DNA of 64,000 bases from Macrostomum lignano (Eukaryota). The stretch spans positions 930,001 to 994,000 of the forward strand of contig NIVC01000001.1 of assembly GCA_002269645.1 (NCBI GenBank), in the 5' to 3' direction. Positions 6,448 to 47,096 of this stretch are shown here, piece by piece (positions within the stretch are counted from its first letter, which is position 1; each line of letters opens with the position of its first letter). The translations under genes were made by a program, and so were the position numbers. Under the pieces are notes generated by a model. It saw only the letters and a list, made by a program, of their open reading frames with translations, ran no database searches and had not been told where the DNA came from.

Positions 6448-9447
6448 TTAATCTCTGAACAGTTCTAGCAAACTGGCGGCAAAGTCAGCGCTTGGATCCA
6501 TCGACGAACTCTCGTCTTCGAAACCCGTGACGTCATCCCATTCGACCACCTTGAAACAGTTGCCTCCCTCCTCGGCGAACTTGACCAGAGCGTCGCGGAA
6601 CTCGGCCAGATGAGCTCGCACATCGCCAGTCCTGATGCCGCCGACTCTGCACTCTGCCTGCTTCCGGATGCCGAGCACGCAGGTAGGAATTTCGAACGCG
6701 ATTCTCCTCGATCGCCAGTCGTGCACTCGGAACGAGTAGCGCCTGCCGCTGGCCGCTCGAAACTCGTGCACACTCGACTGAGCTCCGAGCTCCGCGAGCC
6801 GGCTCAGCAACTTGGACTCGTCCGGGTAGCGACCGCTCTTCGGGATCACGAACGTGTACGGCAGGTCGAACGGGATTGGCTCTGCAGAGCTGGACAGCTG
6901 CTGCATGTCTGAAATGAGTAGAGATGCTCAGTTAGACCAGCAGCTAAGACCAAGCTAATACTCGTAGTAATGACGTGACATCAGTTTTGAAATAAGTCAC
7001 TACTTACAATCACTGAGGGGCTGCGCGAATCCGATCCACGTGTTTGCCGCCATCGCGAACGCCATCGACATCAGAGGAAGCTCGTCTCTGACCGACTCTG
7101 CGCTTGACTGCTGAGCAGCTCTCGATACGAAACTCCACTCGTCAATCAACAGAAAGTCCTCAACTGCAGCAAGCATCTGTGACCGTAAAGAGTCACCGTC
7201 CTCCGCGATGTCGATCACGTGAAGCGAGCTCGGCTCCGACTCCGCTACCTCCTCCGAGCTGGTGTCGCTGAGCTCTCTCAGAATCGAGTTCGCTCTCGGG
7301 TGGCTCTGGATGAAGCGCAACTCGTTTCTGAACTGCTGGAACATTGCCGTCTTGTCCTGATCGGCCATCCTGAGCTTCTGCATGACGAACATGGGTGCAG
7401 CGTAGCCGCAGAAGACCACTGCGTGCGAGTAGGTCGACTGGTCCTTCGTGAGCGGCCTCTCCAGCTGCAGCAGGTACGCCGTTACTCGCTTCTTGTAGCC
7501 GGGACTGTCGAACTCGAGACACAGCTCAGTCGATGCGGTGCTCACCTTGCTGCATCCAGGAAACAGCATCTGTGGACACACACAGGATACCGGCTGGTGC
7601 TGGCTGCTCACGGCGCGCTCGTCCAGCAGCAAGAAGTACTTGGGGACGACTAGGATATTGCTGGGGTTGACATCGGTGAGTCCGAAGTTTATGAGCACTT
7701 GTTCTCGGATGAGGCCTTGAGTATCGAGCAGTGACGAGCGGATCTGGCGTCGCATGTTGGGCAGCACGTAGCCGAGGAACCCGGCGGCCAGTTGCCATGC
7801 GAAGCTCTCGCCTGGGCTGCTAAAGCCGCTGTATTCTGAAAGGATTTGCAAATGGTGCGGAGAGAAGCTAATGCTTTACCTTTTAAGTTTCATCTATATT
7901 AAGTGATGCAGTAAGCTTTTCTGGCTATGCAGATCAGCGGCGAAGTAATTGTTTATTTGAGTTGGAATTATAGTGATGATAAATTCTTCTTTTAATGACC
8001 ACCTGGGTTCCAAAAGTTACGCAAAATGAATGCACAATTTCGTAAGAAAAAAAGTCTTTTGTTTCAAAATTCCATACTTACCTAGTTCTGTATTGTTTAA
8101 ATCTTCCAAGAGTTTTCCAACTCTTTTCGTATTCAAATCGTGCAGTTTCAGCACCTTCATCATTCGTGTTGGAAGCAGCTGCGACAGGTACAGGTGACTG
8201 TCTGTTTTGCTTCTGTAGTTCTTGATTAGGTGGGCCATGCGCTTTCTTAGCCTATGACACTGTAATGTTTGCATGGTTTTGAAAGCAATAAGTATCGAGC
8301 CTTGACCTTGGGCTTACTAAATTGCCCTGTGCTCCAATTGCAAGTGGAGGCAAATGATTACTACAGAATTCAACTGCAACCTGAGTTCGCAAATTTGCAT
8401 TGGACCGTTTGAATTTTTGATTGTAGCCTAAAAGTCTACATTCTTCCTACATGAATCTGTGTAGGTAGAAATTGCAAAATAATAACTTTTTTACTTAATA
8501 TGCATATACCAATTTATCAACAATTTTCTCAATCGCAAACTCAATTAGTTTCTTTCTTAATTTCCTAGCCCAAATAACTACATTTACTTGTAACTTTGCA
8601 TCAATTAATCCTTTTTAAATTTGTTGGTAACTATAGCGAAGTAACGAGAGGATTCAGAAAAGGGTAACAATCGTTATGCTGCATGCCATCAATAAGTTCC
8701 ACTCTACCTTAAAAAATAGATATCTATAGATATCTATAGATATCTATCTAGAAAAAAAAATAGCTCCATACCAAGACGCTCTACACTACCAAGATACTTT
8801 ACACCACCATGTCGCTCTAATCTACCAAAACGCTTTACACTGTCAAGACCCCTACACTACCAATAAGATTCGCAATACCAATAAGATAGTGATGGTTCGC
8901 TCTTATCAATAATGTCCCCTTAATTATTTTAAATAATTGCTTCGAGCAGAAAAAAGCTAATAAGTCCTCGCGCGAGTGCCTCTAAATCTTGGTGAGATTC
9001 AGAAAATGATCAGCAACAACGTATAAGAACTTGTCAATCCTTACCCTCTCCACTGTTTGTCTAAGAAGTTTGGTCAGAAGTGTTGCAGATTCCGGTTGAA
9101 ATGCAGTAAAAGAGTTAAATACTAGTAGAACTTGATGACTTTCATCAATGCTGCTGTACACGGAATTCCCAGAGTTGCAAGGATGTTCTACCAGATTCAA
9201 ACAGCCTCTCAGGAGATCAACGACATTGTCATAGAGTCGGTCCTCCCCGTCACTGGAACCAACCACGATGATGGTGACGGTTCTGTTTCTGTCTGAAAAT
9301 ATTTAGTCGCACTCTTACTGCATCAGAATTCGGTTGTACTAGTATTGAGAGTTATAACAGAAACTGTGCACCGTCTATATACTGTAGTAAATTAACAAAC
9401 ATGCGATAGAGTCACGTACCTTGATTGAAGAATTGATGGCTGCACAT
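6448..9447 (-). CDS. STING-like copy A: TIR-like domain plus two tandem STING CBDs (about 580 aa if started at ATG 9447)
   Basis: Exons 9447-9420, 9292-9045, 8259-8082, 7835-7008 and 6908-6448; all GT-AG, phases 1/0/1/1 consistent. CBD1: GESFAWQLAAGFLGYVLP..PGYKKRVTAY..CGYAAP. CBD2: SMAFAMAANTWIGF..PYTFVIP..GRRYSFRV..FEIPT. Compare STING GLAWSYYIGYLRLILP / GIKDRVYSNSIY / LEYATP. The true start is uncertain. Confidence 0.75.
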
Positions 9448-9824: not shown

Positions 9825-10069
9825 TTAACTATAGCCTCTATTGTAACTACTGAACCACAACGCTAAGAATATTTCTGAATTCTTTCTTTTTGCAGATGCA
9901 ACCAGGAGGGCCAACAGACAGTCTCCTAAATGTCCAGATCGTCTTACTAAAATTAGTTTGACGATACTACAGAGACGTTAAAATGTTTTAATAGCGCTAG
10001 TAAAAAAAAAGAAAATTTTTGTTGTTCTTCCTTCTTCTGATTACACGGAAACCTGTCTGGCAGAGCGAC

Positions 10070-11376: not shown

Positions 11377-12143
11377 TGTAGTGACTGGCTGCTAACTGGC
11401 TATTCAGCAGCACTCACTAGCTTTCCCTAAGAGTGCTGTGATCCGCTGCACAGTAGCTCGGTCCACCTGATCTAGTGAGAGAGTTACCCTGTGCTGGGCC
11501 TAAGTGTTTACTGCCCGATGACTCATCGCCTGAGCGGGTGCGGCAGCCACACAAAATGTCTTCCCCTCCCGCGCTGAGGAGGCGAAGCAGGATGACTCAT
11601 CACCTGCGCGGAGTGTAATGGCTACCTAGAGGGAGTAAACAGGATGACTCATCTGCCCAAGTTATTTTTAGCACAGAATAAGCACGTGACTGTGCACGCA
11701 CGCTGTGCGTGGCCACTGACCTTGAGTCACGCCACTGCTGCGTGACAGGGTTGCCTTATTTGGAAGTTGGCCTTGGATCACGAGTCGCTCGCATGATTCT
11801 GAGGACCAAATAAGGAAGTTTCACGCGCTCACCGCATGAAACTCACGTGACTTTTGGGGGTCCGCTCGGCTATAAATACGGAGCATCTGAGAGCCGTTTT
11901 TCTCCAGATCGTGAGCCGCGTTAGGGAGCTTCCTCGACTCGAGCTGCCTCTGCCTTCGAGCTCTCCTCTCTCATTTCAGGTTTTTCAGGTTTTCAGGTTC
12001 GAGCAGCATTCTACTAAGACGATCGACTGTCGAGACATTTTCAGATTTGCCTTTGCTCCGAGCGACTTTGTTATATATTTTATTTCAGGTGACGGATAGA
12101 CAACTCTGCCGACGCGTCGAGTCCGCACACCAAGGTGGCAGCA
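11377..12143 (+). mobile_element. LTR-like element (probable solo LTR) inside the STING cluster
   Basis: Starts TGTAGTGA and ends GGTGGCAGCA, like the element at 61039-61860. Contains GGCTATAAATA (TATA at 11871) and four TGA(C/G)TCA sites. No target-site duplication found. Confidence 0.45.
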
Positions 12144-12687
12144 ACCCTACCAAGTCAAGGCTAACGTTTTAGGTTCATTTTCAGGCAAATCGATAAGTAG
12201 TACAACGTTGCTATCTAGCTACTTCAGGAGCAGCGGGTTCTATTTCTAGGAAAATCTTTAAGAACCCGAGAAGGAGTAGTACTTCAAATACATGCACAGT
12301 AAAGCAGATTGAAATAATATTTAAGTGAAGTATGTGGTAGGAATTTTGAGATATTTATTTCACCAACAAAAAACACCAACAAATGTTGATTCATTGGCAA
12401 GCAAAAACTGGCACAAAATGGATTTTCATATTTATCATACAATACTCTCGAGGAGTTGCAGGAGTGAAGTCTTCACAGGAAAATTAGGAATTCTAATGAC
12501 TAACAAGTTTAGAGTACAGCAACTAACTAGTCAAGCGGGTTGATGACTATTGAGAGATTAGTTTTATCCATACATTACAAAAAGAGGAAATGCACATGTG
12601 TTAGTCTGCTGCTATCAACAAGCTGAGCAAAAACCTAAAAAATTATTTTCGCCTTGCCCTACCAGTAGGTGACGTCATCACATTCGG

Positions 12688-14151
12688 TCACTGACAAATT
12701 ACATCGTCATATACATGTAACATCTCAAAAAAGCTGGCGGCAAAGTCGGCGCTCGGATCCATCGACGAACTCTCGTCTTCGAAACCCGTGACGTCATCCC
12801 ATTCGACCACATTGAAACGGTTGCCTCCCTCCTCGGCGAACTTGACCAGAGCGTCGCGGAACTCGGCCAGATGAGCTCGCACATCGCCAGTCCTGATGCC
12901 ACCGAATCTGCACTCTGCCTGCTTCCGGATGCCGAGTACGCAGGTGGGAATTTCGAACGCGATTCTCCTCGATCGCCAGTCGTGCACTCGAAACGAGTAG
13001 CGCCTGCCGCTGGCCGCTCGAAACTCGTGCACACTCGACTGAGCTCCGAGCTCCGCAAGCCGGCTCAGAAACTTGGACTCGTCCGGGTAGCGACCGCTCT
13101 TCGGGATCACGAACGTGTACGGCAGGTCGAACGGGATTGGCTCTCCAGAGCTGGACAGCTGCTGCATGTCTGAAATGAGTAAAGATGCTCAGTTAGACCA
13201 ACAGCTAAGATCAAGCTAATACTCGTAGTAATGACGTCACATCAGTTTTGAAATAAGTCACTACTTACAATCACTGAGGGGCTGCGCGAATCCGATCCAC
13301 GTGTTTGCCGCCATCGCGAACGCCATCGACATCAGAGGAAGCTCGTCTCTGACCGACTCTGCGCTTGACTGCTGAGCAGCTCTCGATACGAAACTCCACT
13401 CGTCAATCAACAGAAAGTCCTCAACTGCAGCAAGCATCTGTGACCGTAAAGAGTCACCGTCCTCCGCGATGTCGATCACGTGAAGCGAGCTCGGCTCCGA
13501 CTCCGCTACCTCCTCCGAGCTGGTGTCGCTGAGCTCTCTCAGAATCGAGTTCGCTCTCGGGTGGCTCTGGATGAAGCGCAACTCGTTTCTGAACTGCTGG
13601 AACATTGCCGTCTTGTCCTGATCGGCCATCCTGAGCTTCTGCATGACGAACATGGGTGCAGCGTAGCCGCAGAAGACCACTGCGTGCGAGTAGGTCGACT
13701 GGTCCTTCGTGAGCGGCCTCTCCAGCTGCAGCAGGTACGCCGTTACTCGCTTCTTGTAGCCGGGACTGTCGAACTCGAGACACAGCTCAGTCGATGCGGT
13801 GCTCACCTTGCTGCAGCCAGGAAACAGCATCTGCGGACACACACAGGATACCGGCTGATTCTGGCTGCTCACAGCGCGCTCGTCCAGCAGCAAGAAGTAC
13901 TTGGCAACGACTAGGATATTGCTGGGGTCGATATCGGTGAGTCCGAAGTTTATGAGCACTTGTTCTCGGATGAGGCCTTGAGTATCGAGCAGTGACGAGC
14001 GGATCTGGTGTCGCATGTTGGGCAGCACGTAGCCGAGGAACCCGACGGCCAGTTGCCAAGCGAAACTCTCACCTGGGCAAGCGTTTCTTCGTTGAACCGA
14101 ATTGTCGTTAATCTTTTTAATAGATGTACAGGTATCATTACTGGATTGCAT
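12688..14151 (-). CDS. STING-like copy B: tandem STING-STING without an intact TIR exon (454 aa from ATG 14151)
   Basis: Exons 14151-13269 and 13169-12688 with a 99-nt phase-1 GT-AG intron as in copy A. Near-identical to A from PGESFAWQ onward. The upstream acceptor of A/C is replaced by unrelated open sequence. It could be a 5'-truncated pseudogene. Confidence 0.6.
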
Positions 14152-15279
14152 CTTTGATCTTTTGACAAATCTCTGATGTGTTTGAGTCAAACTGGAACAC
14201 TCTCCAAACGCTACGGTTTCTTATTGTGAGGAGAGACTTTGTATCCTCTTATTTCAGTTGATTTTTGTTCCTTTAACGTTGTCTGCTACATGAATAAAAA
14301 CGTTGAGTTTGCCGTGGAAATTCCATGAAAAAGCTTGTGTGCCGCGTACGAGTTGGCTGGTAAAAACGACGGTATTTCCGCGGGAAGTCCTCGGACAAGC
14401 CCCGGAATCTTTGCGAAAACATTTTAGTTCCTAATAAGACGGTCACTTTGAAACGTAGAAGTACTGCTGTTTATTGTAGTTTGAAAGTGAATTCTCCATT
14501 GCTAACCTCTGTAGGACCTATCTTCCCCAGCCGTTAATTCTAGTAGAATCAAGATTTAGTATAGGAGGATTTGTTAGTAAAGTGTATTTAAAGGCAAAAT
14601 ATTGCGTTCGCATATTTTTTGGAATGCAGTTCTCGAATGCTTTGATTTAATAACCCAATGATAATGATTTCAGTTATACATACAATGAATATATGTACAC
14701 ATAGTTAAGAAATTAAATGGTTAAATCAATGGACTAGAACGCGAAAAGCGAAATTCAGTTTTTGCCCGTAAACTATTCAAGCACTGGCGTTTTACGCTTG
14801 AATTATATTGGCTCTACAAAAGCGGAATATACAATAGTTTTATTCAGATGGCTTGAATGAATGGCTACCCGGAAGGATTATTTATATGTACAAGTCTCAG
14901 GCGCTAGTGATTAGGCAAAATAACAAGGAAGATTGACAATGAAAATGCAATACTCGTACGCATTGATAGAGTTTGAAATACTGACACGAGCACAGATGCG
15001 TCCATCAATCAAAATTGACAGTAATCCATAGACTTATTAATTCCTTGCTGCCATTATACTTCTTTTACGAGTATTCCAAAAAATCCGACCGATCCAAGGA
15101 TTCTTGACTGCTAGACCCAATAACGCCATGTCTACCACGATTGAGACGATAGCAGATTCCAGATCGCAGAAAACGGCATGTTGCAGGTCCGTTAATGCTC
15201 GTGATTTTGCAGTCGCTTATAAATGCCAAGGACGTCAGCCAGAGAAGGATGGATTTTATAGCGTGAATCATTTCTGCTT

Positions 15280-17499
15280 CTAATCTGTTGCTGTCAACAA
15301 GCCAAGAAGAGATTTTGCTAACTCGATGTTGTTCGGTTCGGTCACAAAGCATTCATCGAAACCAGTGACGTCATCCCATTCGACCACGCTAAAACGGTTG
15401 CCTTCCTCCTCGGCGAACTTGGCCAGGGCATCGCGGAACTCGGCCAGATGAGCTCGCACATCGCCAGTCCTGATGCCGCCGAATCTGCACTCTGCCTGCT
15501 TCCGGATTCCGAGCACGCATGTCGGAATTTCGAACGCGATTCTTCTCGATCGCCAGTCGTGCACTCGAAACGAGTAGCGCCTGCCGCTGGCCGCTCGAAA
15601 CTCGTGCATACTCGATTGCGCTCCGAGCTCCGCGAGCTGGCTCAGAAACTTGGACTCGTCCGGGTAGCGACCGCTCTTCGGGATTACGAATGTGTACGGC
15701 AGATCGAACGGGATTGGCTCTGCAGAGCTGGACAACTGCTGCATGTCTGAAATGAGCACAGATTCTCAGTCAGGCTAGCAGGTATGACGTATCTAATAGC
15801 AATGACGTATCTAATAGCAATGACCTATCTAATAGCAATGACGTATCTAATAGCAATGACGTATCTAATAGCAATGACGTATCTAATAGCAATGACGTAT
15901 CTAATAGCAATGACGTATCTAATAGCAATGACGTATCTAATAGCAATGACGTATCTAATAGCAATGACGTATCTAATAGCAATGACGTATCTAATAGCAA
16001 TGACGTATCTAATAGCAATGACGTATCTAATAGCAATGACGTCACATCCGTCTTAAATACGCCACTACTTACAATCACTGAGTGGTTGCGCGAATCCGAT
16101 CCACGTGTTTGCCGCCATCGCGAACGCCATCGACATCAGGGGAAGCTCGTCTCTGACGACTGACTCTGAGCTTGACTGCTGAGCAGCTCTCGATACGAAA
16201 CTCCACTCGTCAATCAACAGAAAGTCCTCAACTGCAGCAAGCATCTGTGACCGTAAAGAGTCACCGTCCTCCGCGATGTCGATCACGTGAAGCGAGCTCG
16301 GCTCCGACTCCGCTACCTCCTCCGAGCTGGTGTCGCTGAGCTCTCTCAGAATCGAGTTCGCTCTCGGGTGGCTCTGGATGAAGCGCAACTCGTCTCTAAA
16401 CTGCTGGAACATTGCCGTCTTGTCCTGATCGGCCATCCTGAGCTTCTGCATGACGAACATGGGTGCAGCGTAGCCGCAGAAGACCACTGCGTGCGAGTAG
16501 GTCGACTGGTCCTTCGTGAGCGGCCTCTCCAGCTGCAGCAGGTACGCCGTTACTCGCTTCTTGTAGCCGGGACTGTCGAACTCGAGACACAGCTCAGTCG
16601 ATGCGGTGCTCACCTTGCTGCATCCAGGAAACAGCATCTGCGGACACACACAGGATACCGGCTGGTGCTGGCTGCTCACAGCGCGCTCGTCCAGCAGCAA
16701 GAAGTACTTGGCAACGACTAGGATATTGCTGGGGTCGATATCGGTGAGTCCGAAGTTTGTGAGCACTTGTTCTCGGATGAGGCCTTGAGTATCGAGCAGT
16801 GACGAGCGAATCTGGTGTCGCATGTTGGGCAGCACGTAGCCGAGGAACCCGGCGGCCAGTTGCCATGCAAAGCTCTCGCCTGGGCTGCTAAACGAGTTGT
16901 CTGAAAGAGGAGGCCATTGTGCATGTGTTTTTCTTATTTTTTAGTCCGTATTGTAGGTATTGTACAGTAGTAACTAATGTATGGTTTATGTTATTAAACT
17001 TTGACCTACCATTGTGGTTTTCTCTCAGTATTTCTTCGAATTTTTCCATGGATAACGCTTGAAGATCGTAGGACCAGAAGACGTCGCTGCGGTTCTTTTC
17101 ATGCGTTTCGGTATCGTTGCGATTGTCATTGTTTTTCACTACATGAAGAACTTTCCTTCTTTTGTTGAGGCACTGGAAAATAAATAAAATTCCTAGTTAA
17201 TGCATGTCGTTGTTTGATATTCTATGTCCATATAATGAAATAGAAATGTCAATTTGACATACCAAATCTACGGCTAGTGACCATAGTGATCGTATTGGAT
17301 GTGTTTTTATCTCAGGCCTTTGATTTTCTACTATCACAATTGCATCGGAGACTTCTATTTGCTTCTCAAGTTCCACAGTGTCTTTCACATCGGAAACAAC
17401 AACATCTACTTGGCCAAATACACGCTTGAAGATTCTTAGCAGACAGTCGCGTTCAACAATTCCTTGCTCAGCGGCTCCGATGGTAAATATCAAAATCAT
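15280..17499 (-). CDS. STING-like copy C: TIR-like domain plus two tandem STING CBDs (564 aa)
   Basis: Exons 17499-17263, 17172-17010, 16900-16073 and 15746-15280; all GT-AG, phases 0/1/1, open throughout. An acceptor (tttcag) lies 3 nt before the ATG. The N-terminus MILIFTIG..QIEVSDAIVIVE..SLWSLAVDL|CLNKRRKVLHVVK has a TIR-like beta/alpha pattern. Confidence 0.8.
15784..16044. repeat. 18-bp minisatellite ATGACGTATCTAATAGCA x14 in the last intron of copy C
   Basis: Directly visible; absent from the 99-nt paralogous introns of A and B. Confidence 0.97.
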
Positions 17500-18134
17500 C
17501 GTCTGAAAGGAAAAAAGCAAAAGTTAAAATCAGTACAAAACCTTTCAGTACTTTCCAAGCCGTAGAAGATTAACTAATTCAGATTTTATTTATTCAGAGC
17601 AGCCAAATCAAAATTGTCTCCGTCGACTGGTATGAATAGCCAAGTTGCATTTTTTGCATGTCTCGTAATAAAGCGCCCAATTATACTACGAATTATACAG
17701 ATTCTGGATTAAGCGTATTCCATTTCACGTTCTATTCTAATGAGTTCGACTTCCTAACTCATCCGCACGTGGGTCATTCTGAGCAAATTTTTAAGTGCTA
17801 AGCAAATTAGTTAGCTACCGATCTACCAGTGTAGGAAACCAGTGTGTATTTGCACTGATGAAAAGGCTTTTGGGATGGATGTTCGGCATTTACCGATGAT
17901 TCTAGCTGCTGGCTTCAATTCTGTTCAGGTCAATGGACTTCACTTAAGACGAGAGCCGAGACAAGAGTACTGCTTGAAGATAAATGCTGAAGCTTTTGGT
18001 TGGAAATTTGTGCTTTATTGAAGCTAAGCCTAAGTTCGGCACTTCTGCTCTAAACCAAAACGGCATTTAGTTAAACATTTTTTCTAGCATTTTAAGTATT
18101 CTATAATTCCGCCCACCATTTCAAGCGATAGTTG

Positions 18135-19743: not shown

Positions 19744-20574
19744 CTAATCGTAGTTTGATTTAAAGAATTTTCTCGATTCGTCATCTGCGAAGACCCTCTC
19801 GAGCGCGTCCGACGGCGCCAAGTGTCGACAGAAAGTTTTCGTCAGGCCAGTCCAGAACCCGAACGAAAGTTCAGCCAGCATGGTCTTGAATGTCATGATG
19901 TACTCGTCAAGGTTCTGCTTCAGTCTCGTCCGACACACGCCTCCGACGCCGCTCTTGGCTTGCCCGCGAAGGTTCGCACGGCGGCACATCAAAGGCCGCT
20001 CTTAGCTCTCCGCGCGAGTTTGACTTTGATGTGTAAAAACTGAAACTGTAATAGCTGTTCTCGTTGTCTTCAAACTGACTCCAAGCTCACTTGGACTGGT
20101 ACAAATAAATGATCGAACGTGAGCGTAACGATGTTGTTTTGACACCAGCACATTGTCCTGATAATTTGAAACGGATTCGCTGCCAAGAAACGACAATGAG
20201 GCCGACTTTGCTGGCGCTGCACTGCTTGCTGTCTGAAAGTCCGAAAATCAAACTTGAATTTTAGATTTCTGCGAGTTCTCGATAGAGTTGGAACTAGCCA
20301 CTTGCCCACACCCTCTCGAGCAAAAGGACACCCAAAAGATGAAGACTTACCCCCCCCCCCACTCTGAGAGTTTCTTTACCGTAGTAGATAATCAATCATC
20401 TTACAGTTAACATGCATTAAGACATGCAGCAATACCTTTGGAATTTCGTCGCAATGCCTCATCAATTTGTTGCAGATTATTAGAACGTCGAAATTTGGAT
20501 CAAAAGCAGACTGGTTCGCAGGTCAGCAACACGGACCTGCAGGCTTCCAGATGACTCCATGCTTCAGCGTCAAC
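19744..20574 (-). pseudogene. Frameshifted relic (D) of a gene-F-type TIR/STING gene
   Basis: 19760-20050 is clearly similar in DNA to the last exon of F, with a 5-nt deletion (TGC-GAAC versus TGCGTGCTGAAC, ~19975) and further indels. 20574-20436 resembles the first exon of F (GTTGACGCTGAAGC versus GCTGACGCAGAAG; RSVLLTCEP versus QSVVLVCDP) with an in-frame TGA. Confidence 0.75.
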
Positions 20575-23736: not shown

Positions 23737-26700
23737 TTACTCCAAGCGAAGATTTGCCACATCGGCATGTTCAGCTTCGACATCAGCGAATACGAGGTCC
23801 CGCAGGCTCTCTGCGTACTCGCGCGTCGGATGGCGCCAAGTGTCGACAGGAAATTTGTCGTCAGGCCAGTCCAGCACTTGAACGGATTTCTGCCAGTCCA
23901 TGCACTCAAGCATGGTCTTGAATGCCATGATGTACTCGTCAAGGTTCTGCTTCAGTTTCGCCCGACGCACGCCTCCGAAGCCGCTCTTGGCTTGCTTGCG
24001 AAGGTTCAGCACGCACGGCGGCACCTCAAAGGCCACGCTTAGCTCTCGCGAGTTTGACTTCCAAGTGTACAAGCAGAACCGATAGTTTCTGCCCTCGCTT
24101 TGAAACGTGTCTTTCTTAAAAGTGACTCCCAGCTTACTGAGCTGCTCTTGCAGTTCGGAATACTCAGGATACCGCGCACTGCGTGGTACAACGTACTTGT
24201 AAGGCAGCTTGAACGGCAGTCTGCCGGCTTGTTCACCTGGGTAAAGATTCAGGCAATTTTGTTAAAAAATCATTTTCACGCACCGAATGGGAGTGTACCT
24301 GATATGGGGGTGAGCCACAGTACCGTAGCTGCAACTGCCGCCGACAAACTAAGACTTACATTGAACCAAATGATGAACAAATCCAAAGCAGGAGTTTGCA
24401 GCCATTGAATAAGCCATGGACATCAGAGGAAGGTTTTCATCGACCTTGATAGTAGGATTTCTAAGATCTAAAATTGTCAATTGTAGACAGTAAAATACTT
24501 ATAAAACATTATGACCAAGTTTCACTAATTAATAGAGAAACTTAAAAGTACTCAAAAATAACTTACTTAGACGTTGAATTAATTCGTGGAATGAACAATG
24601 CCTTGATTCGCCCTCAGAGAAAGCAAACTGAATATTGTCTAATCTGTCGTTTGTTAGATTTAGGATAGACACAACATTATTCTCAGGAAGAATTTGCAAT
24701 GAAGACGGTAGGACGCTGTAGATGTCTTTATTGACATTTTGGGTGATGACAACGACCACCAGATTGTACTCCTGACGCATGTGAATCTGAAATTGACCAA
24801 TTAGTTTTATATGATAAAACTATGTGACGTTATCACTTATAGAAATGAAAACTTACGTAAGTCACAGCTGATGTTATGTCTCGAAGCAAGTGGTTGTGCT
24901 TTTTATCACTGTAGTCAAAGCTGCTGTACTCCTTGTTGAAACACTCCAAGTCTTGGAGAGATGCAAACAAAATCATTCGCCGGCATTTGACGAGAACTTC
25001 GGCAAACGTGTTGTTTAACAGCTGGAAATTTTCTACACGAAAGCCTTCTTCTTGCTCGAGCCTTTCGACGACAGCATCGTGAAGCTCTTCGACTGACCTT
25101 GAAAACTTGACAACTAAAACGTCACTGTCAACTTGATGATGATTATCAATCGATCGGATAGGTTCATTGCGGCGATCATTAAAAATTTCCTCCTTGATGC
25201 GGGAGAGAAAGAGTTTATCCCAGTTATCGTCAGACTCCCCCTTCTTACGCTCAACAATACAAGCTGCTTTGTCAAAATTCGCAGACTTGTCAGGCAGGAC
25301 GTCTACAGAACCGAATTTTGCAAGCAGCTCGTTTGCTTTGGGGTGGTTCAAAATGAACTGCAACTCTTCCTTGAAGAGCTTGTAGGCATTATGCAGCATT
25401 TCTTCTGAAACATCTAAATCTTTGATTCCTCGAAGCTCGCGAATGACAGTGACTGGAGGAGCGAAGCCTCCCAAGATTATTGCGTGGCTGTAGCGCTCAG
25501 ACTGAGAGATTTTCAATTCTTCACCAAATTTGACAAGGTAGAGAGGAATTGTTTTGGAATAACCTGGACTTTCAAACTCTAATGTTATAGGCTGCGCACA
25601 ATGTTGCGGCGGTGCACATAATTCCTCATTGTCTGCAGGACTAGAATTCGAAGTCATTACTGGTTCACTCAGTGTGCGTTGAATCTTGCAACATGTAGCA
25701 AAAAGCTTCTCCGGATTTGGATTCACATGACTGTCACTGTCGATGTCGTCCTCCTTCAGTAGCACAAAGTACTTCTTCAAAACGAATATTTTTTTTTGAT
25801 CAATGCTGCCAAGACCACATTGATCGAGCAATTCTGCTTTTAAGAGGCTACTGTCATTAGTTACTTGGTCTCTCAAAACCTTGCCGATATTAGGCAAAAT
25901 ATATGCCAAGAAACCTGTGGCATACTGCCAAGCAAGACCATTTCCAAGGCTCCCAAATACCATACTTTTGCTTACTTCTACAGCTGCCTCTTCAGTCAGC
26001 CACGCTTTGACAGCTTCTTGAATTGCGCCCAAACTGCAGGGCCCAACTGCACGGACAAAGCTCTGAATGCGGTGGTTTTTAAGCACGGTGTCTCCGTCAG
26101 ATCCATCAGAGGCAGCGTACATCTTGACGATGTACATGACTGGCTCTCTCAGAGCAATCATCCTGTCAAAAGCCATCTGGTACAGATGACCGCGAGCGTG
26201 GCTCGAGATTTCTCCTGGTGGCTTGAAGTACACAACGATCACTTTGTCACACTCAGCCATGTTGTCGGAAATGGCATTCCATTCAAAGCAATTTGGATCT
26301 CGTTGGCGCAAGCGAAATCCCGAGTGCAGAAGGAAGTTGATAAGCGAATCGAAATCATCCATCTGTTTGCTGCTGGCTGCTGTATCGCCAACAGGTAGCG
26401 CAAAGATAATGTCTGAAATGAAAATAAAAATTACTGAAATATTGCTGCTTACAATACGGTTCATACAGTATCTGAGACTTAATTACATGTAAATCCTATC
26501 TACCTTTTTTTAGCCATATTTGCAACTCGGCTTCCATGTTCTCAACTGGTATTCTTCTGACATCTTCGCGTTTTCCGACTTTTTCTAGCAGCTTTTCTGC
26601 CGCAAGATTTTCCGCTTCGACAATGAGGACGCACTTGTTGCAGTCTTTGGCTCGCTGGAATGCGCAATAATAACACGGGATACTAGTGTGGGCCTGAATA

Positions 26701-26980
26701 ATGTTGAGAGTACTCCCAGAAACACTCAAGAATCAAAACCAATTACCTCGAGAAGACGCTCAACATTGCCGATAAATTTGTAAGACCATCCTTTCGACAC
26801 AACCAGAATAAGTCGATCAGAGTTCTCGACATCATTAAGTGTTTGAGTCTTAACGACATAGCAGGATTCGGAATCAAGAACGGCGTGAATTCTCTGCCTG
26901 ATGTCGCTTGGGTCGCAGACGAGCACAACCGACTGACTGCGGGTTGGCTGAAGGCTTGCTGCTGCCTCTTCTGCGTCAGC
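23737..26980 (-). CDS. Gene F: TIR-TIR-STING-TIR-STING protein (at least 935 aa; no in-frame ATG at its 5' end)
   Basis: Exons 26980-26747, 26693-26504, 26412-24857, 24786-24567, 24467-24360 and 24236-23737; all GT-AG, phases 0/1/0/1/1, open throughout. CBD1 GNGLAWQYATGFLAYILP; CBD2 SMAYSMAANSCFGF..EGRNYRFCLY..FEVPP. TIR-like units: SVVLVCD..VENSDRLILVVS; IIFALPV..MAECDKVIVVY; DVLVVKFS..VVERLEQEEGFRV..CRRMILFAS. Confidence 0.8.
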
Positions 26981-27322
26981 CTGGAAGTGAGAGCCAAGAT
27001 ATAGACAACAATATATTAAAGAATAGTAAAATAATATACAATAATTTACTAATTAAAAAAAATGACATCCGAACAACATGCAATATTTTCCGCTGCTAAT
27101 TTCTTAACACGGCCGATAGCTATGAGAAATTTATAAATTAATAACACGAAAAGCAGCTACTAAAGCAACGTAAACGTGTTGCTTTGTTATTAGTATGCAT
27201 TTATTAATAACATTCGGGGCCAATTGACAACAAAATGCACATGTCAAATGAACTCTACTAATTCATCCGACTCAATTTAATTCTAATAAAGTCGCTAAGT
27301 TGGGTGGCTTGAAGTTCAACAG

Positions 27323-30300
27323 CTACTCTTTTAGCTTGTAGTCGAAGTCGGGCGAATCATTGTAGTCGTGCGGCAGCTCTGGCTTGAGCACGACGTGCCA
27401 ATTGAGCAGCGGTGTGTCAGCTCGCTTAGCCAGAGTGTACACGGTTTTGTGCACCGGCTTGCGGTAGGCGCCCAACTGCTCCATCTGCTCGCTGTACGGC
27501 GGCCAGATGCGCGCCTGTTCGTCGGGTGTTGGCACTCGCGGCTCCTGTTTAAAGGTGATAGTTTAATAATCAATTGGAATCTTATTGACAATCTTTATAG
27601 TCTGGTAGTATGGTTGTCGCGACTTTATTAGTAATTTCTTAGTTCATCTGCACTTGTATCTTGTTCACTCTGTTTTCTCTCTCCCTCTCTGTCTAGTTCA
27701 GTCTTGTTATTCTTATCTATCTCTCTCTCACTCGCTGCCTTCTGATTGGCTCCTCAATCTCGCCTCTTGCCTTGCACACCAACACCACCCCTCTTTTTCT
27801 TATCTGCACTCAACCCCCCCCCCCCCAGTTTAATGACATAAATATGTGGTTGGGCCCCTGCACCACACTTGCTTTGTTTGGTGTTTTTTTGAACTCTAAT
27901 TACTTTACTTGACGCCCGAACAAAATACCGAACAAAAACAATATAATGTAGACTGTTTAAAGAAGTTCTCATGGGATTTTTTCTTCAAAGCTGGCCCATT
28001 TTTACAGACCTGGCTTGGAGCGTCTTTTAATTCGTTGACACTTGACAGACAGACTGTTGTTGCAGCTGGGAGTAGAATTTTACATATGCATTGGTAAAGC
28101 GCAAGAGCTTTCCAGATGACCGTAATATTTTACTTTCTTAGTGCACCTTGTCCCTGTGATATATCTAAATATACATAGACTATTTTAAGGCCAACATTGC
28201 TTTATCAAAAGCATCACGGATAGAGGGGTTAGCGAGGCTTCTTTGAGACCCAGCGGCCTATGACAACAGCAGCCACAAGCCAAATGTAGATGCGAGTTTT
28301 TCTAGGGGAGGGTGGGGGTCAGGTCGCACTTTAAGCGACATATAATCAGCGAGAGGCATTACCGCCCATTCCGCCGACTTCCCTGAGCAGGCACACAAGC
28401 GCGCGGAGGCTACGACCCTCTTGATTCGCTAGATCCATCGCCGTCTACACACTTATAGTTAGTAAACAATAATAATACTCAACAGTAAATTGGACACCAA
28501 CCTGAAAGCTATACGGATCCCACTTGGGTCGGAGCAGCATGAGCGGCGGCGCCAGTTCGCTAAACCGATCCGGATGCTGCCTGATGAGGTGAGCCTCTAT
28601 AGCCGGCGGGTATCGGCACACCGATTCGATCACTTGCACAGGCGCCGGCTCAAAGCTGCGCGATTTGAATTCCTCTTCGCGCTCTCTCGGCACCAGCACC
28701 CAGTCAGGCAGGTGAGTGCCAGGTATGAGGGTCGGTGTGCCCTCCGCTTCGCCAGGCGGCGACATCAGCCGGCCGCGGAACACCTCCGTGCCCCACACGC
28801 GACAGCGGCGCCGAGAAGCGTCGCCAAGCACCGGCTCGACTCGGGTTGGCACGCAGTAGCATGGCTCTTTGTACCTGGTTTGGTAATTGGATAGGATTTG
28901 ATGGCTCTTTGTACCTGGTTTGGTAATTGGATAGGATTTGATGGCTCTTTGTACCTGGATTGGTAATTGACATGATTTGATAGCTCTTTGTACCTGGTTT
29001 GGTAATTGGATAGGATTTGATGGCTCTTTGTACCTGGTTTGGTAATTGGATAGGATTTGATGGCTCTTTGTACCTGAATTGGTAATTGACATGATTTGAT
29101 AGCTCTTTGTACCTGGTTTGGTAATTGGATAGGATTTGATGGCTCTTTGTACCTGAATTGGTAATTGACATGATTTGATAGCTCTTTGTACCTGGTTTGG
29201 TAATTGGATAGGATTTGATGGCTCTTTGTACCTGGTTTGGTAATTGGATAGGATTTGATGGCTCTTTGTACCTGGTTTGGTAATTGGATAGGATTTGATG
29301 GCTCTTTGTACCTGAATTGGTAATTGACATGATTTGATGGCTCTTTGTACCTGAATTGGTAATTGACATGATTTGATAGCTCTTTGTACCTGGATTGGTA
29401 ATTGACATGATTTGATGGCTCTTTGTACCTGGATTGGTAATTGGATAGGATTTGATGGCTCTTTGTACCTGGTTTGGTAATTGGATAGGATTTGATGGCT
29501 CTTTGTACCTGAATTGGTAATTGACATGATTTGATAGCTCTTTGTACCTGGTTTGGTAATTGGATAGGATTTGATGGCTCTTTGTACCTGGTTTGGTAAT
29601 TGGATAGGATTTGATGGCTCTTTGTACCTGAATTGGTAATTGACATGATTTGATAGCTCTTTGTACCTGGTTTGGTAATTGGATAGGATTTGATGGCTCT
29701 TTGTACCTGAATTGGTAATTGACATGATTTGATAGCTCTTTGTACCTGGATTGGTAATTGACATGATTTGATGGCTCTTTGTACCTGGATTGGTAATTGG
29801 ATAGGATTTGATGGCTCTTTGTACCTGGTTTGGTAATTGGATAGGATTTGATGGCTCTTTGTACCTGAATTGGTAATTGACATGATTTGATAGCTCTTTG
29901 TACCTGGTTTGGTAATTGGATAGGATTTGATGGCTCTTTGTACCTGGTTTGGTAATTGGATAGGATTTGATGGCTCTTTGTACCTGGTTTGGTAATTGGA
30001 TAGGATTTGATAGCTCTTTGTACCTGGTTTGGTAATTGACATGATTTGATGGCTCTTTGTACCTGGTTTGGCAATTGGATAGGATTTGATGGCTCTTTGT
30101 ACCTGGTTTGGTAATTGGATAGGATTTGATGGCTCTTTGTACCTGGTTTGGTAATTGGATAGGATTTGATGGCTCTTTGTACCTGGTTTGGTAATTGGAT
30201 AGGATTTGATAGCTCTTTGTACCTGGTTTGGTAATTGACATGATTTGATGGCTCTTTGTACCTGGTTTGGTAATTGGATAGGATTTGATGGCTCTTTGTA

Positions 30301-30930
30301 CCTGGTTTGGTAATTGGATAGGATTTGATGGCTCTTTGTACCTGGATTGGTAATTGACATGATTTGATGGCTCTTTGTACCTGGTTTGGTAATTGGATAG
30401 GATTTGATGGCTCTTTGTACCTGGTTTGGTAATTGGATAGGATTTGATAGCTCTTTGTACCTGGTTTGGTAATTGGATAGGATTTGATAGCTCTTTGTAC
30501 CTGGTTTGGTAATTGGATAGGATTTGATAGCTCTTTGTACCTGGTTTGGTAATTGGATAGGATTTGATGGCTCTTTGTACCTGAATTGGTAATTGGATAG
30601 GATTTGATGGCTCTTTGTACCTGAATTGGTAATTGACATGATTTGATGGCTCTTTGTACCTGAATTGGTAATTGATACGATTTGATGACTCTGGCCCTCC
30701 GTGTTACTATACATGTAGTGACTGACAGGTTATCATGGAGAGATGGATAAGAGAAGTGCCAGCCATTTTGAAATCGCAGTTTGATATAAACAAACTCACT
30801 TAGCGGCGTGATTCAGCCGATAGAAGCAGCGCCCAACGCCCAGATCTTTCAGCTGGATGGCCAGCTCGGCAAAGAATTTGCCAGTAAGAACTGGCGGCGC
30901 CATGCGGCCATAGTATTTCACGCGGGGCAT
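27323..30930 (-). CDS. MRPS34: Mitochondrial small ribosomal subunit protein mS34 (241 aa)
   Basis: Exons 30930-30800, 28874-28502 and 27544-27323. MPRVKYYGR..GKFFAELAIQLKDLGVGR..KYKEPCYCVPTRV..RVWGTEVFRG..DWVLVP..EEEF..YPP matches MRPS34 motifs (GxGR, EPCY, WGxxxFxG, DWxLVP, YPP). Confidence 0.88.
28305..28420 (-). mobile_element. Truncated copy of the SINE found at 32867 and 59171
   Basis: Shares GCACTTTAAGCGACATA..GCGAGAGGCATTAC.GCCCATTCCGCCGACT.CCCTGAGCAGG..CAAGCGCGCGG. Confidence 0.75.
28862..30690. repeat. 40/39-bp minisatellite (about 46 copies) in MRPS34 intron 1, containing the 3' splice site
   Basis: Sense-strand unit ..AATTACCAAACCAG|GTACAAAGAGCCAT..; the last copy supplies the real acceptor and the first 14 nt of exon 2. 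Confidence 0.97.
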
Positions 30931-32228: not shown

Positions 32229-33592
32229 GGAAGGTTCAGTGGCGATTCTCAGGGAAGGTTCAGTGGCGATTCTCACTGAAGGTTCAGTGGCGATTCTCAC
32301 TGAAGGTTCAGTGGCGATTCTCACTGAAGGTTCAGTAGGGATTCTCACTGAAGGTTCAGCGACGATTCTCACTGAAGGTTCAGCGACGATTCTCACTGAA
32401 GGTTCAGCGGCGATTCTCACTGAAGGTTCAGTGGCGATTCTCACTGAAGGTTCAGTGGTGATTCTCACTGAAGGTTCAGTGGCGATTCTCACTGAAGGTT
32501 CAGTGGCGATTCTCACTGAAGGTTCAGTAGGGATTCTCACTGAAGGTTCAGCGACGATTCTCACTGAAGGTTCAGTGGCGATTCTCACTGAAGGTTCAGT
32601 GGCGATTCTCACTGAAGGTTCAGTGGCGATTCTCACTGAAGGTTCAGTGGCGATTCTCACTGAAGGTTCAATGGCGATTCTCAGAAAGGTTCAGTAGGGA
32701 TTCTCAGGGAAGGTTCAGTAGGGATTCTCACTGAAGGTTCAGTGGCGATTCTCAGGGAAGGGTTAGTGCCGATTCTCACTGAAGGTTCAGTGGCGTTTCT
32801 CACTGAAGGTTTGAAGGTTCAGTGGCGATTTTCAGGGAAGGTTCAGTGGCGATTCTCAGGGAAGGGTTTTTTTTTAGAGGCAGGGGGGTTGTGTGCACCC
32901 TGGCGCACTTTCAGCGACATAGGCACACAACCGGCGAGAGGCATTACTGCCCATTCCGCCGACTCCCCTGAGCAGGTATACAAGCGCGCGGATACGTACG
33001 CAGGCACACACTCACACAGGAGTGTACAGCGGCCCTAACTTTATATTATCGTTAGGCATGTACACTTCACTGCGCCTTGGGGGTTGGCTCTCAAGGCCGT
33101 TAATTGCACGAGCAGAGCCAAGCCGAGATTCCAATTCAGCCCCAAATTAATGTGACTGCACTTGGAATCGAGCCTGGGTCGCTGGCACAGCAGAGCAGCT
33201 GCGCTACCGCTGGGCTACGGCCCCCACTTTCTCACTGAAGGTTTGAAGGTTCAGTGGCGATTTTCAGGGAAGGATCAGTGGCGATTCTCAGGAAAGGGTT
33301 AGTGGCGATTCTCACTGAAGGTTCAGTGGCGTTTCTCACTGAAGGTTTGAAGGTTCAGTGGCGATTTTCAGGGAAGGTTCAGTGGCGATTCTCAGGGAAG
33401 GGTTAGTGCCGATTCTCACTGAAGGTTCAGTGGCGATTGTCACTGAAGGTTCGTGGCGATTCTCAGGGAAGGTTCAGTGGCGATTCTCAGGGAAGGTTCA
33501 GTGGCGATTCTCACTGAAGGTTCAGTGGCGATTCTCAGGGAAGGTTCAGTGGCGATTCTCACTGAAGGTTCAGTGGCGATTCTCAGGGAAGG
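32229..33592. repeat. 24-bp minisatellite GGTTCAGTGGCGATTCTCACTGAA, interrupted by a SINE
   Basis: Directly visible at 32229-32860 and 33232-33592, between TECPR1 and MRPS34. Confidence 0.95.
32867..33225 (-). mobile_element. tRNA-derived SINE (full length)
   Basis: Minus-strand head GGGGCCGTAGCCCAGCGG (A box) and GGCTCGATTCC (B box), with an A-rich tail; near-identical copy at 59171-59529. Confidence 0.85.
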
Positions 33593-33657
33593 TTGTATAC
33601 ACTATGCGGGAGGCCACACTGGAGAGAGAGAAGCGGCACCGAGAGAAGCGACTTTTG

Positions 33658-34028
33658 TCACCGCCTGGCAGCCATGCCGCGAACACAGGCGGACTGGCAC
33701 AGGCCCGCCAGGCCGCGGTTCCAGCCGGTGCCGCACGGCGACTCCTGGCTGCACATCCCGGAGCGCAGCGCCAGGTCGCGCCCCTCCAGCAGGACGGCGC
33801 AGACCCGGCCGGCGCCGACGCTTACGCTGGCGACGCCGCGACAGACCAGCTCCCAGTCAGTGCCGTCGGGGAAATCGCGGGGCTGAACGTTGCGACGCCG
33901 ATAGAGGCAGCCGGATTCGTCAACAGCCCACAGCTCGCGCCCGTCTGCTGACACCTGCGATTGAGGCGGGGGGTCAGGAACTCTGTGTGGACAGACAGAC
34001 AGACACTAAGGTAGGCAGACAGAAGGAC

Positions 34029-34107
<79 letters not shown>

Positions 34108-37100
34108 CACAGACAGACAGACACACAGACAGACAGACAGACAGACACACAGACCTGAGTCAGTTTGGCGCCGTCATCCGGCAGCCCCACAATCGACCAG
34201 CTGCAGCCGAGCGGCTGGTCGGCCGACAGTCCCAGCCGGGAGTAGCAGCGGCCGTCGGCGCCGATGGCGTAAAGCCGCCAGCCTGAGCCGGCGGAGCAGC
34301 TAATTAGGGGCACCTGGAATAACAGACCAGACGGCTAAGTAATGATGATTCGGGATTTCAAATTACACTTAGGATAGTAAATTCGATTTTGTATTCCCAT
34401 GTAAAATTAGATTTTTGGATTCCCCATGAAATTTCCTTTCTGAGATTTACCTTGAGAATTCCTTTTTAGGATTCCCTATTCTTGGGGATTCCCCATGAAA
34501 ATTCCTTTTGGGATTCACCATGGGAATTCCTGATTTGGATTTACCATCTATTCTGGGATTACCGATGGAAATTTCCTTGGGATTCCCCATTATTTTTGGC
34601 ATTCTCCATGGGAATTCCCTTTGGGATTTACCTTGGAAATTCTATTTTGTGATTCCCCATACTTTTTGGGATTCAGCACGGAAATTTGCTTCGAGATTAC
34701 TAATAAAATATCTATATGAGGGACTCCCCCTGAATAAGTCAAATTGGAATCGTAATGAATAATATGGTTACCTCGCAGGCAATAAGCGACCAGCGATCGC
34801 CGGCCGGATTGGAATCGGCGTCAAAGCCCGCCCGGTGCAGCAGCTGCCCATTGTAGGCCACAGCGTAGGCTACGGAAGAATCCGGTGCCAAGGACACCTG
34901 CTTGAGGGCTACGGTGCCCGGCACGGCTAGCCAAGGCCCGGCGTCCAGCACAACATAGGTTCGGCTCCATTTTCTACGTCTCAGACCGGTGTTCCATCGC
35001 TTGGTCTGCGGCGTGGAAAGCATGTGGGAGTGGCTATCACTGACATCTTGGCACTGGCTATCACTGACATCTTGGCACTCTCTATCAGTGACATCTTGGC
35101 ACTGGCTATCACTAACATCTTGTCATTGGCTATCACTGACATCTTGGCACTGGCTATCAGTGACAACTTGGCACTGGCTATCACTGACATCTTGTCACTG
35201 GCTATCACTGACATCTTGTCACTGGCTATCACTGACATCTTGGCACTGGCTATCAGTGACAACTTGGCACTGGCTATCACTGACATCTTGTCACTGGCTA
35301 TCACTGACATCTTGGCACTGGCTATCACTGACATCTTGGCACTGGCTATCACTGACATCTTGGCACTGGCTATCACTGACATCTTGGCACTGGCTATCAC
35401 TGACATCTTGGCACTGGCTATCACTAACATCTTGTCATTGGCTATCACTGACATCTTGTCACTGGCTATCACTGACATCTTGGCACTGGCTATCAGTGAC
35501 AACATGGCACAGGCTATCACTAACATCTTGTCATTGGCTATCACTGACATCTTGGCACTGGCTATCAGTGACAACTTGGCACTGGCTATCACTAACATCT
35601 TGTCACTGGCTATCAATGACATCTTGGCACTGGCTATCACTGACATCTTGTCACTGGCTATCAGTGACATCTTGGCACTGGCTATCACTGACATCTTGGC
35701 ACTGGCTATCACTGACATCTTGGCACTGGCTATCACTGACATCTTGGCACTGGCTATCACTGACATCTTGGCACTGGCTATCACTGACATCTTGTCACTG
35801 GCTATCAGTGACATCTTGGCACTGGCTATCACTGACATCTTGTCACTGGCTATCAGTGACATCTTGTCACTGGCTATCACTGACATCTTGGCACTGGCTA
35901 TCACTGACATCTTGTCACTGGCTATCACTGACATCTTGGCACTGGCTATCACTGACATCTTGTCACTGGCTATCACTGACATCTTGGCACTGGCTATCAC
36001 TGACATCTTGGCACTGGCTATCACTGACAAGTACTTGCTTAGTACTTGTCAGCTTAGTACTTGAAAAACACGGATTCGGGCAGCAAAAATACGTACCTTT
36101 GAGTAAGGCCCTTTCAGTTCCTTGGCGTACTGCCAGCCGTGCTCATCGGTGTCCTCGGCAGAGATTCGCACGGCCCAGTCGGTCTCCCAGACCCAGTTGG
36201 CCTCGCAGCCGGCGCCGATGAGGGCCTCCTTGGGCAGAGCGTCGCTCCAGGAGGCGGCGTTGCCGGCAACAGCAGCGGCCGCGGCCTGCTCATTGGGAGG
36301 CGAGTGGTGCAGGAAGCCGCGATCCGTGTAGCCGGACAGGGGCCGCCAGTGCTGGTACTCGTAGGCGCAGCACACCTGCCTGCGTTTTATTAGGGGGTGT
36401 GGGTTGGTAAGATAACCTGCATATGCTATTTGGAGCATAACTATTTAGATATGAGTACATAGGAACATATTTAACTTCTCGCAGGTGATAAAGTCATAGA
36501 TAGCGGGTGATTATCACAGGTGATAAAGTCATAGATAGAGGGCGATTCTCACAGGTGATAGAGTCATAGATGGAGGGCGATTCTCACAGGTGATAAAGTC
36601 ATAGATAGAGGGTGATTATCACAGGTGATAAGTCATAGATAGAGGGCGATTCTCACAGGTGATAGAGTCATAGATAGAGGGCGATTCTCATAGGTGATAG
36701 AGCCAAAAATAGAGGGCGATTCTCAGAGATGATAGAGTCATAGATAGAGGGCGATTATCAGAGGTGATAGTCATAGAGGGCGATTATCACAGGTGATAGT
36801 CATGGAGGGCGATTATCACAGATGATAGAGTCATAGATAGAGGGCGATTATCAGAGGTGATAGAGTCATAGATAGAGGGCGATTATCACAGGTGATAGAG
36901 CCATAGATAGATGGCGATTTTCACAGGTGATAGTCATAGAGGGCGATTATTACAGAAGATAGAGTCATAGATAGAGGGCGATTATCACAGGTGATAGAGC
37001 CATAAATAGATGGCGATTCTCACAAGTGATAGACATAGAGGGCGATTTTCACAGATGATAGAGTCATAGATAGAGGGCGATTATCACAGGTGATAGAGCC

Positions 37101-46994: not shown

Positions 46995-47096
46995 GCCGCT
47001 GCTGCCAGTACTGCAACTACTGCTAGTAGCTTGGAGGGAAATGCTGCAATTTTAAAATGTGAAATCATTTTCTTGGAATTTCCGATAGTTTAGCCT

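Follow-up and report, generated by a model that had tools for sequence, protein, structure and literature searches.

Two predicted STING folds in one soluble protein of the flatworm Macrostomum lignano

Does a locus of Macrostomum lignano encode a STING receptor, although the reports on other flatworms describe none? According to published surveys, flatworms have lost STING and cGAS (Schistosoma; PMC4117786), STING/cGAS was not found in the planarian Schmidtea (PMC13563047), and 'most' flatworms were described as having no cGAS-like synthase beyond Mab21-like proteins (PMC9980059). The locus is a six-exon gene on the minus strand of contig NIVC01000001.1 (assembly GCA_002269645.1), within a stretch of 64,000 nucleotides (contig positions 930,001 to 994,000) that was analysed as a whole and is called the window below, with position 1 as its first letter. 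A preliminary description, made from the letters alone, had read its product as a soluble protein with three TIR-like and two STING-like units. We found that the region is a real, transcript-annotated and expressed M. lignano gene, the product of which is predicted to carry two STING ligand-binding folds and probably one TIR-like unit.

An expressed gene for a soluble protein with two predicted STING folds

The minus strand was read from 27400 to 23400, and a six-exon model spanning 26980-23737 was rebuilt and borne out: all five introns are GT-AG with compatible phases, and the spliced exons gave an open frame of 922 codons up to the TAA stop, the remaining two frames containing 39 and 63 stops. 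The product is the NCBI protein PAA94788.1 (BOX15_Mlig027466g3, 'partial', Macrostomum lignano; 100% identity over 100% of the length), whose annotation derives from a genome-guided RNA-seq transcriptome in which transcriptional units were split at mapped trans-splice and poly(A) sites (PMC5730564); the '.g3' suffix fits this splitting of units into genes. The canonical, phase-compatible splicing of six exons claimed in the preliminary description was confirmed (every AG...GT flank is present, the phases fit and a single frame is free of stops), as was its remark that the list of open reading frames (ORFs), which is of bacterial style, holds the gene only in fragments; the protein is shorter than the at least 935 residues given there. 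The possibility, also raised there, that the two halves are transcribed as separate genes was ruled out because exon 3 alone (26412-24857, 1556 nt) runs from alpha/beta unit 2 across STING1 into alpha/beta unit 3 (Table 1).

The protein belongs to a fast-evolving family for which three architectures can be proposed from the sequences. Type A (this gene and P0002) is predicted to have the order alpha/beta unit 1, alpha/beta unit 2, STING1, alpha/beta unit 3 and STING2; type B (P0005, P0009 and P0010, ~580 residues) consists of an alpha/beta domain, STING1, a linker of ~13 residues and STING2, and type C (P0007, 712 residues) of an alpha/beta domain, STING1, alpha/beta unit 3 and STING2. Structures were modelled with AlphaFold2 (AF2) from shallow alignments (4-8 sequences), the best of five models being kept, and were compared to the PDB with Foldseek, the output of which gave no query residue ranges. 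In the full-length model, residues 740-910 were the best region (predicted local distance difference test, pLDDT, 70-83). Its best match was the oyster TIR-STING 6WT7 (E=3e-9, 396 columns) and its second the bacterial TIR-STING 9LMQ (E=3e-8, 349 columns); over 100 STING ligand-binding domains came next (E~1e-6, TMt 0.55-0.66, ~180 columns). Since the pLDDT of STING1 was ~30 in this model, these matches were assigned to unit 3 plus STING2. Residues 130-549 (25151-26410, minus strand) were also modelled alone from an eight-row alignment; in this model, built without STING2, the STING1 core had a pLDDT of 55-78, and 6WT7 was again the best match (E=3.4e-6, 402 columns), ahead of STING domains with E of 2e-5 to 2e-4 and TMt of 0.5-0.6. 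On these models, STING1 and STING2 are both predicted to adopt the STING fold, and the two STING-like units of the preliminary description were borne out, the one placed at ~25950-25320 falling inside the STING1 region and the one at 24467-23737 inside the STING2 region.

For STING1, sequence comparisons pointed in the same direction. Its helix alpha1 signature GLAWQYATGFLAYILP (residues 287-302) was aligned by BLASTP against GLAWSYYIGYLRLILP of human STING (E=6e-6), and the Pfam model STING_LBD (PF15009) matched helix alpha1 only (E=0.0011) with scores that did not reach the gathering cut-off of 27 (18.7 and 18.5 bits for STING1 of types A and A', respectively), there being no PF15009 match for STING2 or for any type B or C paralog. 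A four-sequence STING1 family profile gave 69 matches in the PDB, the best 60 of which were all STING, with Nematostella STING at the top (E=0.014) and a further, weak match in collinear position at the YATP motif; hhalign of the family to mammalian STING gave E=5.7e-4 over 138 collinear columns at a probability of only 30%. Human and mouse STING served as the reference sequences in these comparisons. Motifs conserved in STING1 are G-F at human G166-Y167, (F/Y)A(A/P)P at YATP and SPG(Y/F)xK(R/T) at the lid, and the unit carries a lineage-specific insertion of ~50 residues.

For STING2, no match was obtained to human STING by BLASTP, to the PDB with the family profile or to mammalian STING with hhalign, and no similarity between STING1 and STING2 was detected by pairwise BLASTP or by hhalign between the two families. 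The columns of STING2 that are invariant across the paralogs read MAANxxxGF, G-R and AFE(V/I)P; aligned by eye, G-F would correspond to human G166-Y167, G-R to the lid residue R238 and F-E to L259-E260.

The protein appears to be soluble. The maximum 19-residue Kyte-Doolittle mean was 1.15, with no window above 1.6, and the same scan detects the transmembrane (TM) region of human STING, where the mean rises to 1.6, in agreement with the earlier remark that a hydrophobic TM stretch is absent. A C-terminal tail bearing a TBK1/IRF3 motif was not observed in the type A protein.

AF2 predicted an alternation of strands and helices in all three alpha/beta units. Unit 1, which occurs in type A only, was modelled at a pLDDT of 27-53 and unit 2 below 50; unit 2 aligned with the N-terminal domains of P0007 and P0005, by which it is a homologue of the domain that opens the type B and C proteins. 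Neither of these two units gave a Pfam match, and we assign no fold to them. In the region of unit 2, the alignment to 6WT7 (402 columns) had a root-mean-square deviation (RMSD) of 16 A, and the full-length TM-STING 8IK0 scored almost like 6WT7 against the N-terminal model, also in a long alignment, so that the long 6WT7 alignment is weak evidence for a TIR domain in unit 2. Unit 3 is the best TIR candidate. It was modelled at a pLDDT of ~40-69 with five strand-helix repeats, and its strand 607-613 is followed by a helix (614-626, after strand C) with E618 and E623. E618 (in DLE) is invariant across types A and C, whereas E623 (in NKEY of ECFNKEY) lies in NSEY in type A' and in a MAFFT gap in type C, with NDER nearby; the Glu of ECFNKEY is a plausible catalytic residue. 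With the full-length model, the TIR-STING structures outranked the STING-only ones by 2-3 orders of magnitude in E at about twice the alignment length, and the automatic UniProt name of the type C paralog A0A1I8GSK2, 'SEFIR domain-containing', was the sole positive profile-type hint. From this ranking, the acidic residues after strand C and the SEFIR name, unit 3 is probably TIR-like. Extending the TIR label to all three units, as had been done before, is not justified because the profile searches gave no TIR or SEFIR match; of the earlier claim, the strand-helix alternation stood, and a TIR-like nature obtained moderate structural support for unit 3.

Start of the gene, second copy and paralogs

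The exon 1 boundary reads tctcacttccag|GCTGAC, the first codon (GCT at 26980) following immediately on an AG acceptor. The closest in-frame stop lies 25 codons upstream of exon 1 with no ATG between, and the stretch from 27322 to 26981 held no candidate for a first exon with an in-frame ATG; within the ORF, Met does not occur before residue 118. The spliced leader of M. lignano is CGGTCTCTTACTGCGAAGACTCAATTTATTGCATG, with the 3' end ...TTGCATG (PMC8629364); joined at 26981/26980, it would place its terminal ATG in frame with GCT GAC and give a protein of 923 residues. Since no in-frame ATG was obtained between MRP-S34 and exon 1, we prefer this start, and trans-splicing probably supplies the start codon of the gene. 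The 'partial' flag at NCBI would then be explained by an ATG that comes from the spliced leader. The AG acceptor is also kept in a second genomic copy of the gene (see below). On the same strand, a gene for mitochondrial ribosomal protein S34 (MRP-S34) stops at 27323, ~340 bp upstream of exon 1; this spacing is below the 1 kb used as the operon criterion in M. lignano (PMC8629364), so the arrangement of the two genes is operon-like.

The MRP-S34 gene extends from 27323 to ~30700 on the minus strand (PF16053 matched in the second copy), and a 1.8-kb array of 40-bp tandem repeats inside it (28861-30692) gives rise to spurious ORFs of 456-649 residues. The UniRef entry A0A1I8G5R6 (P0003, 'RING-type domain-containing protein') fuses MRP-S34 to the STING gene and lacks helix alpha1 of STING2 as well as parts of STING1; gene prediction across the operon-like pair has probably produced this artefact.

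The second copy, on contig NIVC01000486.1 (L001), matches the gene of the window in its six exons, its splice sites and its flanking MRP-S34. Its spliced translation equals P0002 exactly (927 residues, 92% identical to the type A protein of the window), and neither copy has lost its reading frame (922-927 codons) or any of the ten splice sites. By the method of Nei and Gojobori, the copies differ by 77.5 non-synonymous and 55.5 synonymous changes (dS 0.099; ratio of non-synonymous to synonymous rates, dN/dS, 0.37), which indicates purifying but relaxed selection; values for single domains rest on few changes each. The intact second copy and the dN/dS of 0.37 argue that the gene is not a decaying pseudogene. 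Upstream of MRP-S34 in the second copy (L001 1-3227) lies a gene with Hyd_WA/Tectonin repeats (PF06462; PF19193 weak); lectins of the Tectonin type are often connected with immunity.

An exhaustive phmmer search of 1.84 billion representative proteins returned three clusters only, all from M. lignano, and homology searches queried with the whole protein or with the alignment of the family yielded P0001-P0003 alone, so that in these searches the family appears restricted to this species. In the window, three tandem type B paralogs (B1, B2 and B3), with STING1 and STING2 fused directly and no alpha/beta unit between them, occupy 6448-17502 on the minus strand. The spliced models of B1 and B3 are intact ORFs with quite different N-terminal domains, B1 being close to P0005 (PAA82216.1); for B2, exons for an N-terminal domain were not found upstream. 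B3 has the order alpha/beta domain, STING1, linker of ~13 residues and STING2, and most of its last intron, which splits STING2 after helix alpha1, is filled by a near-perfect 18-bp minisatellite (15784-16042, 14.4 copies, 99% matches). About 4 kb downstream of the type A gene, and also in the second copy (L001 17306-17574), a type A STING2 last exon survives as a frame-shifted remnant. Tandem clusters of paralogs with variable architecture are typical of immune gene families.

Table 1. Positions in the window of the type A gene, its predicted units and its tandem relatives
Feature	Position	Strand	Remarks
AG acceptor, probable spliced-leader trans-splice site	26981..26982	minus	adjoins first codon GCT at 26980
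Exon 1	26980-26747	minus	234 nt, residues 1-78
Exon 2	26654-26504	minus	151 nt
Exon 3	26412-24857	minus	1556 nt, residues 129-647; alpha/beta unit 2, STING1, into alpha/beta unit 3
Exon 4	24786-24567	minus	220 nt
Exon 5	24467-24360	minus	108 nt; codes STING2 helix alpha1
Exon 6	24236-23737	minus	500 nt; TAA stop at 23739-23737
Alpha/beta unit 1 (predicted)	26505..26935	minus	residues 16-128; split by intron 1; type A only
Alpha/beta unit 2 (predicted)	25973..26504	minus	residues 129-275; split by intron 2
STING1, predicted STING ligand-binding-domain fold	25163..25960	minus	residues 280-545
Alpha/beta unit 3 (predicted)	24568..25132	minus	residues 556-720; split by intron 3; best TIR candidate
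STING2, predicted STING ligand-binding-domain fold	23770..24441	minus	residues 730-912; split by intron 5
Degenerate frame-shifted remnant of type A STING2 last exon	19832..20065	minus	tblastn 82% identity over 33 residues
Paralog B3	15280..17502	minus	565 residues; exons 17502-17263, 17172-17010, 16900-16073, 15746-15280
Paralog B2	12688..14190	minus	apparently STING1-STING2 only
Paralog B1	6448..9447	minus	580 residues; exons 9447-9420, 9292-9045, 8259-8082, 7835-7008, 6908-6448

Outside the genes, a large share of the window consists of dense satellite and minisatellite arrays (250-2036, 3470-3948, 32230-39104 and 41431-55100; periods of 12-266 bp, many with 20-60 copies), which are the source of most long ORFs in the ORF list. 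A 158-residue ORF at 56296-56772 on the minus strand resembles a bromodomain (BRD7/BRD9-type motifs, by eye) and probably belongs, as an exon, to a neighbouring gene that has no bearing on the STING finding.

Receptor, effector and the competing readings

The reading that we favour, with measured confidence, is that of an expressed, probably trans-spliced gene for a soluble protein whose family branched off from the oyster-type TIR-STING receptors of metazoans and diverged very far, the protein acting as a cytosolic cyclic-dinucleotide receptor-effector. Its proposed function is modelled on the bacterial TIR-STING proteins, in which filaments driven by cyclic dinucleotide activate the TIR NADase (PMC9402430; described in PMC8204762). 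The STING units would bind a cyclic dinucleotide, supplied by an endogenous cGAS-like enzyme or by bacteria; ligand binding would drive oligomerisation, and this would gather the flanking alpha/beta domains, above all unit 3, which would then cleave NAD+ or serve as a signalling scaffold, as in bacterial or oyster TIR-STING. Several observations weigh against this reading. The mean pLDDT was 43.9 for the full-length model and 50 for residues 130-549, only the STING2 core standing at 70-83, and because of this modest confidence each STING call amounts to one best model of five. In the hhalign comparison of the STING1 pocket to human STING, Y167 is replaced by F, E260 by G and T263 by P or A, with P264 kept, and R238 corresponds to T in type A and to R in types B and C; given the replacements at E260, T263 and, in type A, R238, this pocket may be degenerate. 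As to the effector part, Pfam searches (E up to 10) with each isolated unit of types A, B and C gave neither TIR (PF01582/PF13676) nor SEFIR (PF08357), PADLOC and NCBIfam gave no TIR or SEFIR match for the alpha/beta units, the N-domain profile found in the PDB only insignificant SIGIRR (E=1.2) and TLR3 (E=2.2), and the unit 3 profile gave no TIR match in the PDB. The TIR-STING alignments of 349-402 columns had RMSD values of 9-17 A, and their alpha/beta parts were modelled at a pLDDT below 70.

These points bear on two other readings of the protein. According to one, which we consider unlikely, the STING folds have lost their ligand and persist only as protein-protein or oligomerisation modules in a lineage-specific scaffold. 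The extreme divergence with Pfam scores below the cut-off or absent, the lack of any sequence match of STING2 to STING and the replacement of several canonical contact residues in STING1 would fit such a loss, as would the reports of flatworms without cGAS and STING partners (PMC4117786, PMC13563047), but G-R and F-E of STING2 and SPG(Y/F)xK and (F/Y)A(A/P)P of STING1 are invariant across paralogs of ~30% identity, and purifying selection appears to act on both STING units. Since lid and pocket positions are invariant among paralogs this distant, the comparison suggests that a pocket is maintained in the family. Canonical STING is a symmetric homodimer, which is needed to bind one cyclic dinucleotide. 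In the type B paralogs of the window, no more than ~13 residues separate STING1 from STING2. The two flatworm pockets seem to have diverged differently, STING1 keeping the alpha1 signature and having lost E260, STING2 keeping R238-like and E260-like residues (by eye for STING2), and it is conceivable, though rather doubtful, that STING1 and STING2 of one chain pair as an asymmetric single-chain STING dimer with a heterotypic pocket. If this is true, the receptor could read asymmetric or non-canonical nucleotide signals, and the flatworm lineage would have kept and rebuilt a STING signalling that was thought lost in the phylum. The other reading accepts a STING receptor and gives it effectors that are not TIR, for instance flavodoxin-like or Rossmann-like alpha/beta domains, with an output other than NAD+ cleavage or TIR signalling; we hold it to be possible at a rather low probability. 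It draws on the silence of the TIR and SEFIR hidden Markov models in every library, with SIGIRR and TLR3 as the only PDB hints, on the low pLDDT of units 1 and 2, on the lack of detectable similarity when the alpha/beta units were compared with each other, and on the long alignment obtained with TM-STING 8IK0, by which length alone is no proof of TIR. On the other hand, for the C-terminal module the oyster and bacterial TIR-STING structures outranked all STING-only structures over 349-396 columns, unit 3 shows the fivefold strand-helix repeat of a TIR domain, with acidic residues after strand C, and one type C paralog carries the SEFIR name.

An annotation artefact or pseudogene, arising either from misjoined neighbouring genes or from a decaying duplicate, appears highly improbable. 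The NCBI flag 'partial', the wrong fusion of A0A1I8G5R6 to MRP-S34 with skipped exons and the degenerate last-exon fragment at 19832-20065 might be taken as signs of it, but the single 1556-nt exon links unit 2, STING1 and unit 3, the ORF and ten splice sites are intact in two copies at a dN/dS of 0.37, the type C protein P0007 has the same order of STING1, unit 3 and STING2, and the flag is accounted for by the spliced-leader ATG.

Relation to known STING systems

In canonical animal STING (TMEM173), four TM helices precede the ligand-binding domain (PF15009), the fold of which is a long alpha1 helix and then a mixed alpha/beta core. Both flatworm units are predicted to share its ligand-binding fold, and STING1 keeps the alpha1 signature GLAWxYxxG(F/Y)LxxxLP and (F/Y)AxP at the YATP position; on the other hand, the flatworm protein lacks the four N-terminal TM helices, has two STING domains per chain and scores under the Pfam gathering cut-off. 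Soluble TIR-STING fusions have been described in the bacterial cyclic oligonucleotide-based antiphage signalling system (CBASS) and occur rarely in animals, among them oyster (PMC10732462). Like oyster TIR-STING, the flatworm protein is without TM helices and has an alpha/beta domain directly N-terminal to the STING ligand-binding domain; 6WT7 was the best Foldseek match of both flatworm modules, a duplicated module also occurs in oyster, and both animals are lophotrochozoan. The two differ in that sequence identity is only 13-14%, the flatworm protein fails the Pfam TIR models and stays below the cut-off of the STING model, type A has an extra N-terminal alpha/beta unit, the sister paralogs drop the internal unit and fuse STING1 to STING2, and STING1 and STING2 are mutually dissimilar (the oyster double-STING proteins being compared by their literature description only). 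When a padded 31-residue alpha1 fragment of oyster 6WT6 was used as a query, only two short fragments were matched. With the CBASS TIR-STING of Sphingobacterium faecium (9LMQ), the second-best match of the C-terminal module (E=3e-8, 349 columns), the flatworm protein would share solubility and the order of TIR followed by STING, whereas it comes from a eukaryotic gene that contains five spliceosomal introns, is probably trans-spliced, has no CD-NTase (cGAS/DncV-like nucleotidyltransferase) operon (PADLOC gave no match) and encodes two STING units per chain instead of one.

The preliminary description had called the architecture unrecognised, which overstated its novelty. According to the literature, soluble TIR-STING proteins have already been annotated in oyster, some of them with a second STING domain, so that the question raised there of an architecture already annotated in many species is answered partly in the affirmative, and the UniProt name 'Stimulator of interferon genes protein' already stands on two paralogs of the family. 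A literature search found no mention of STING in Macrostomum. What is new here is the phylum, the divergence below profile thresholds, the extra N-terminal unit and the direct fusion of two unlike STING domains.

M. lignano, an early-branching, free-living flatworm and transgenic laboratory model, would thus carry an expanded family of soluble STING-fold proteins that standard profiles miss, and where STING is reported as 'lost' in a fast-evolving phylum, the searches may not have been sensitive enough. The family would offer natural variants with two different STING domains per chain, with or without an intervening TIR-like domain, and make it testable whether a tandem STING can act as a single-chain receptor, which ligand it reads, and whether an animal TIR-STING works as an enzyme or as a scaffold.

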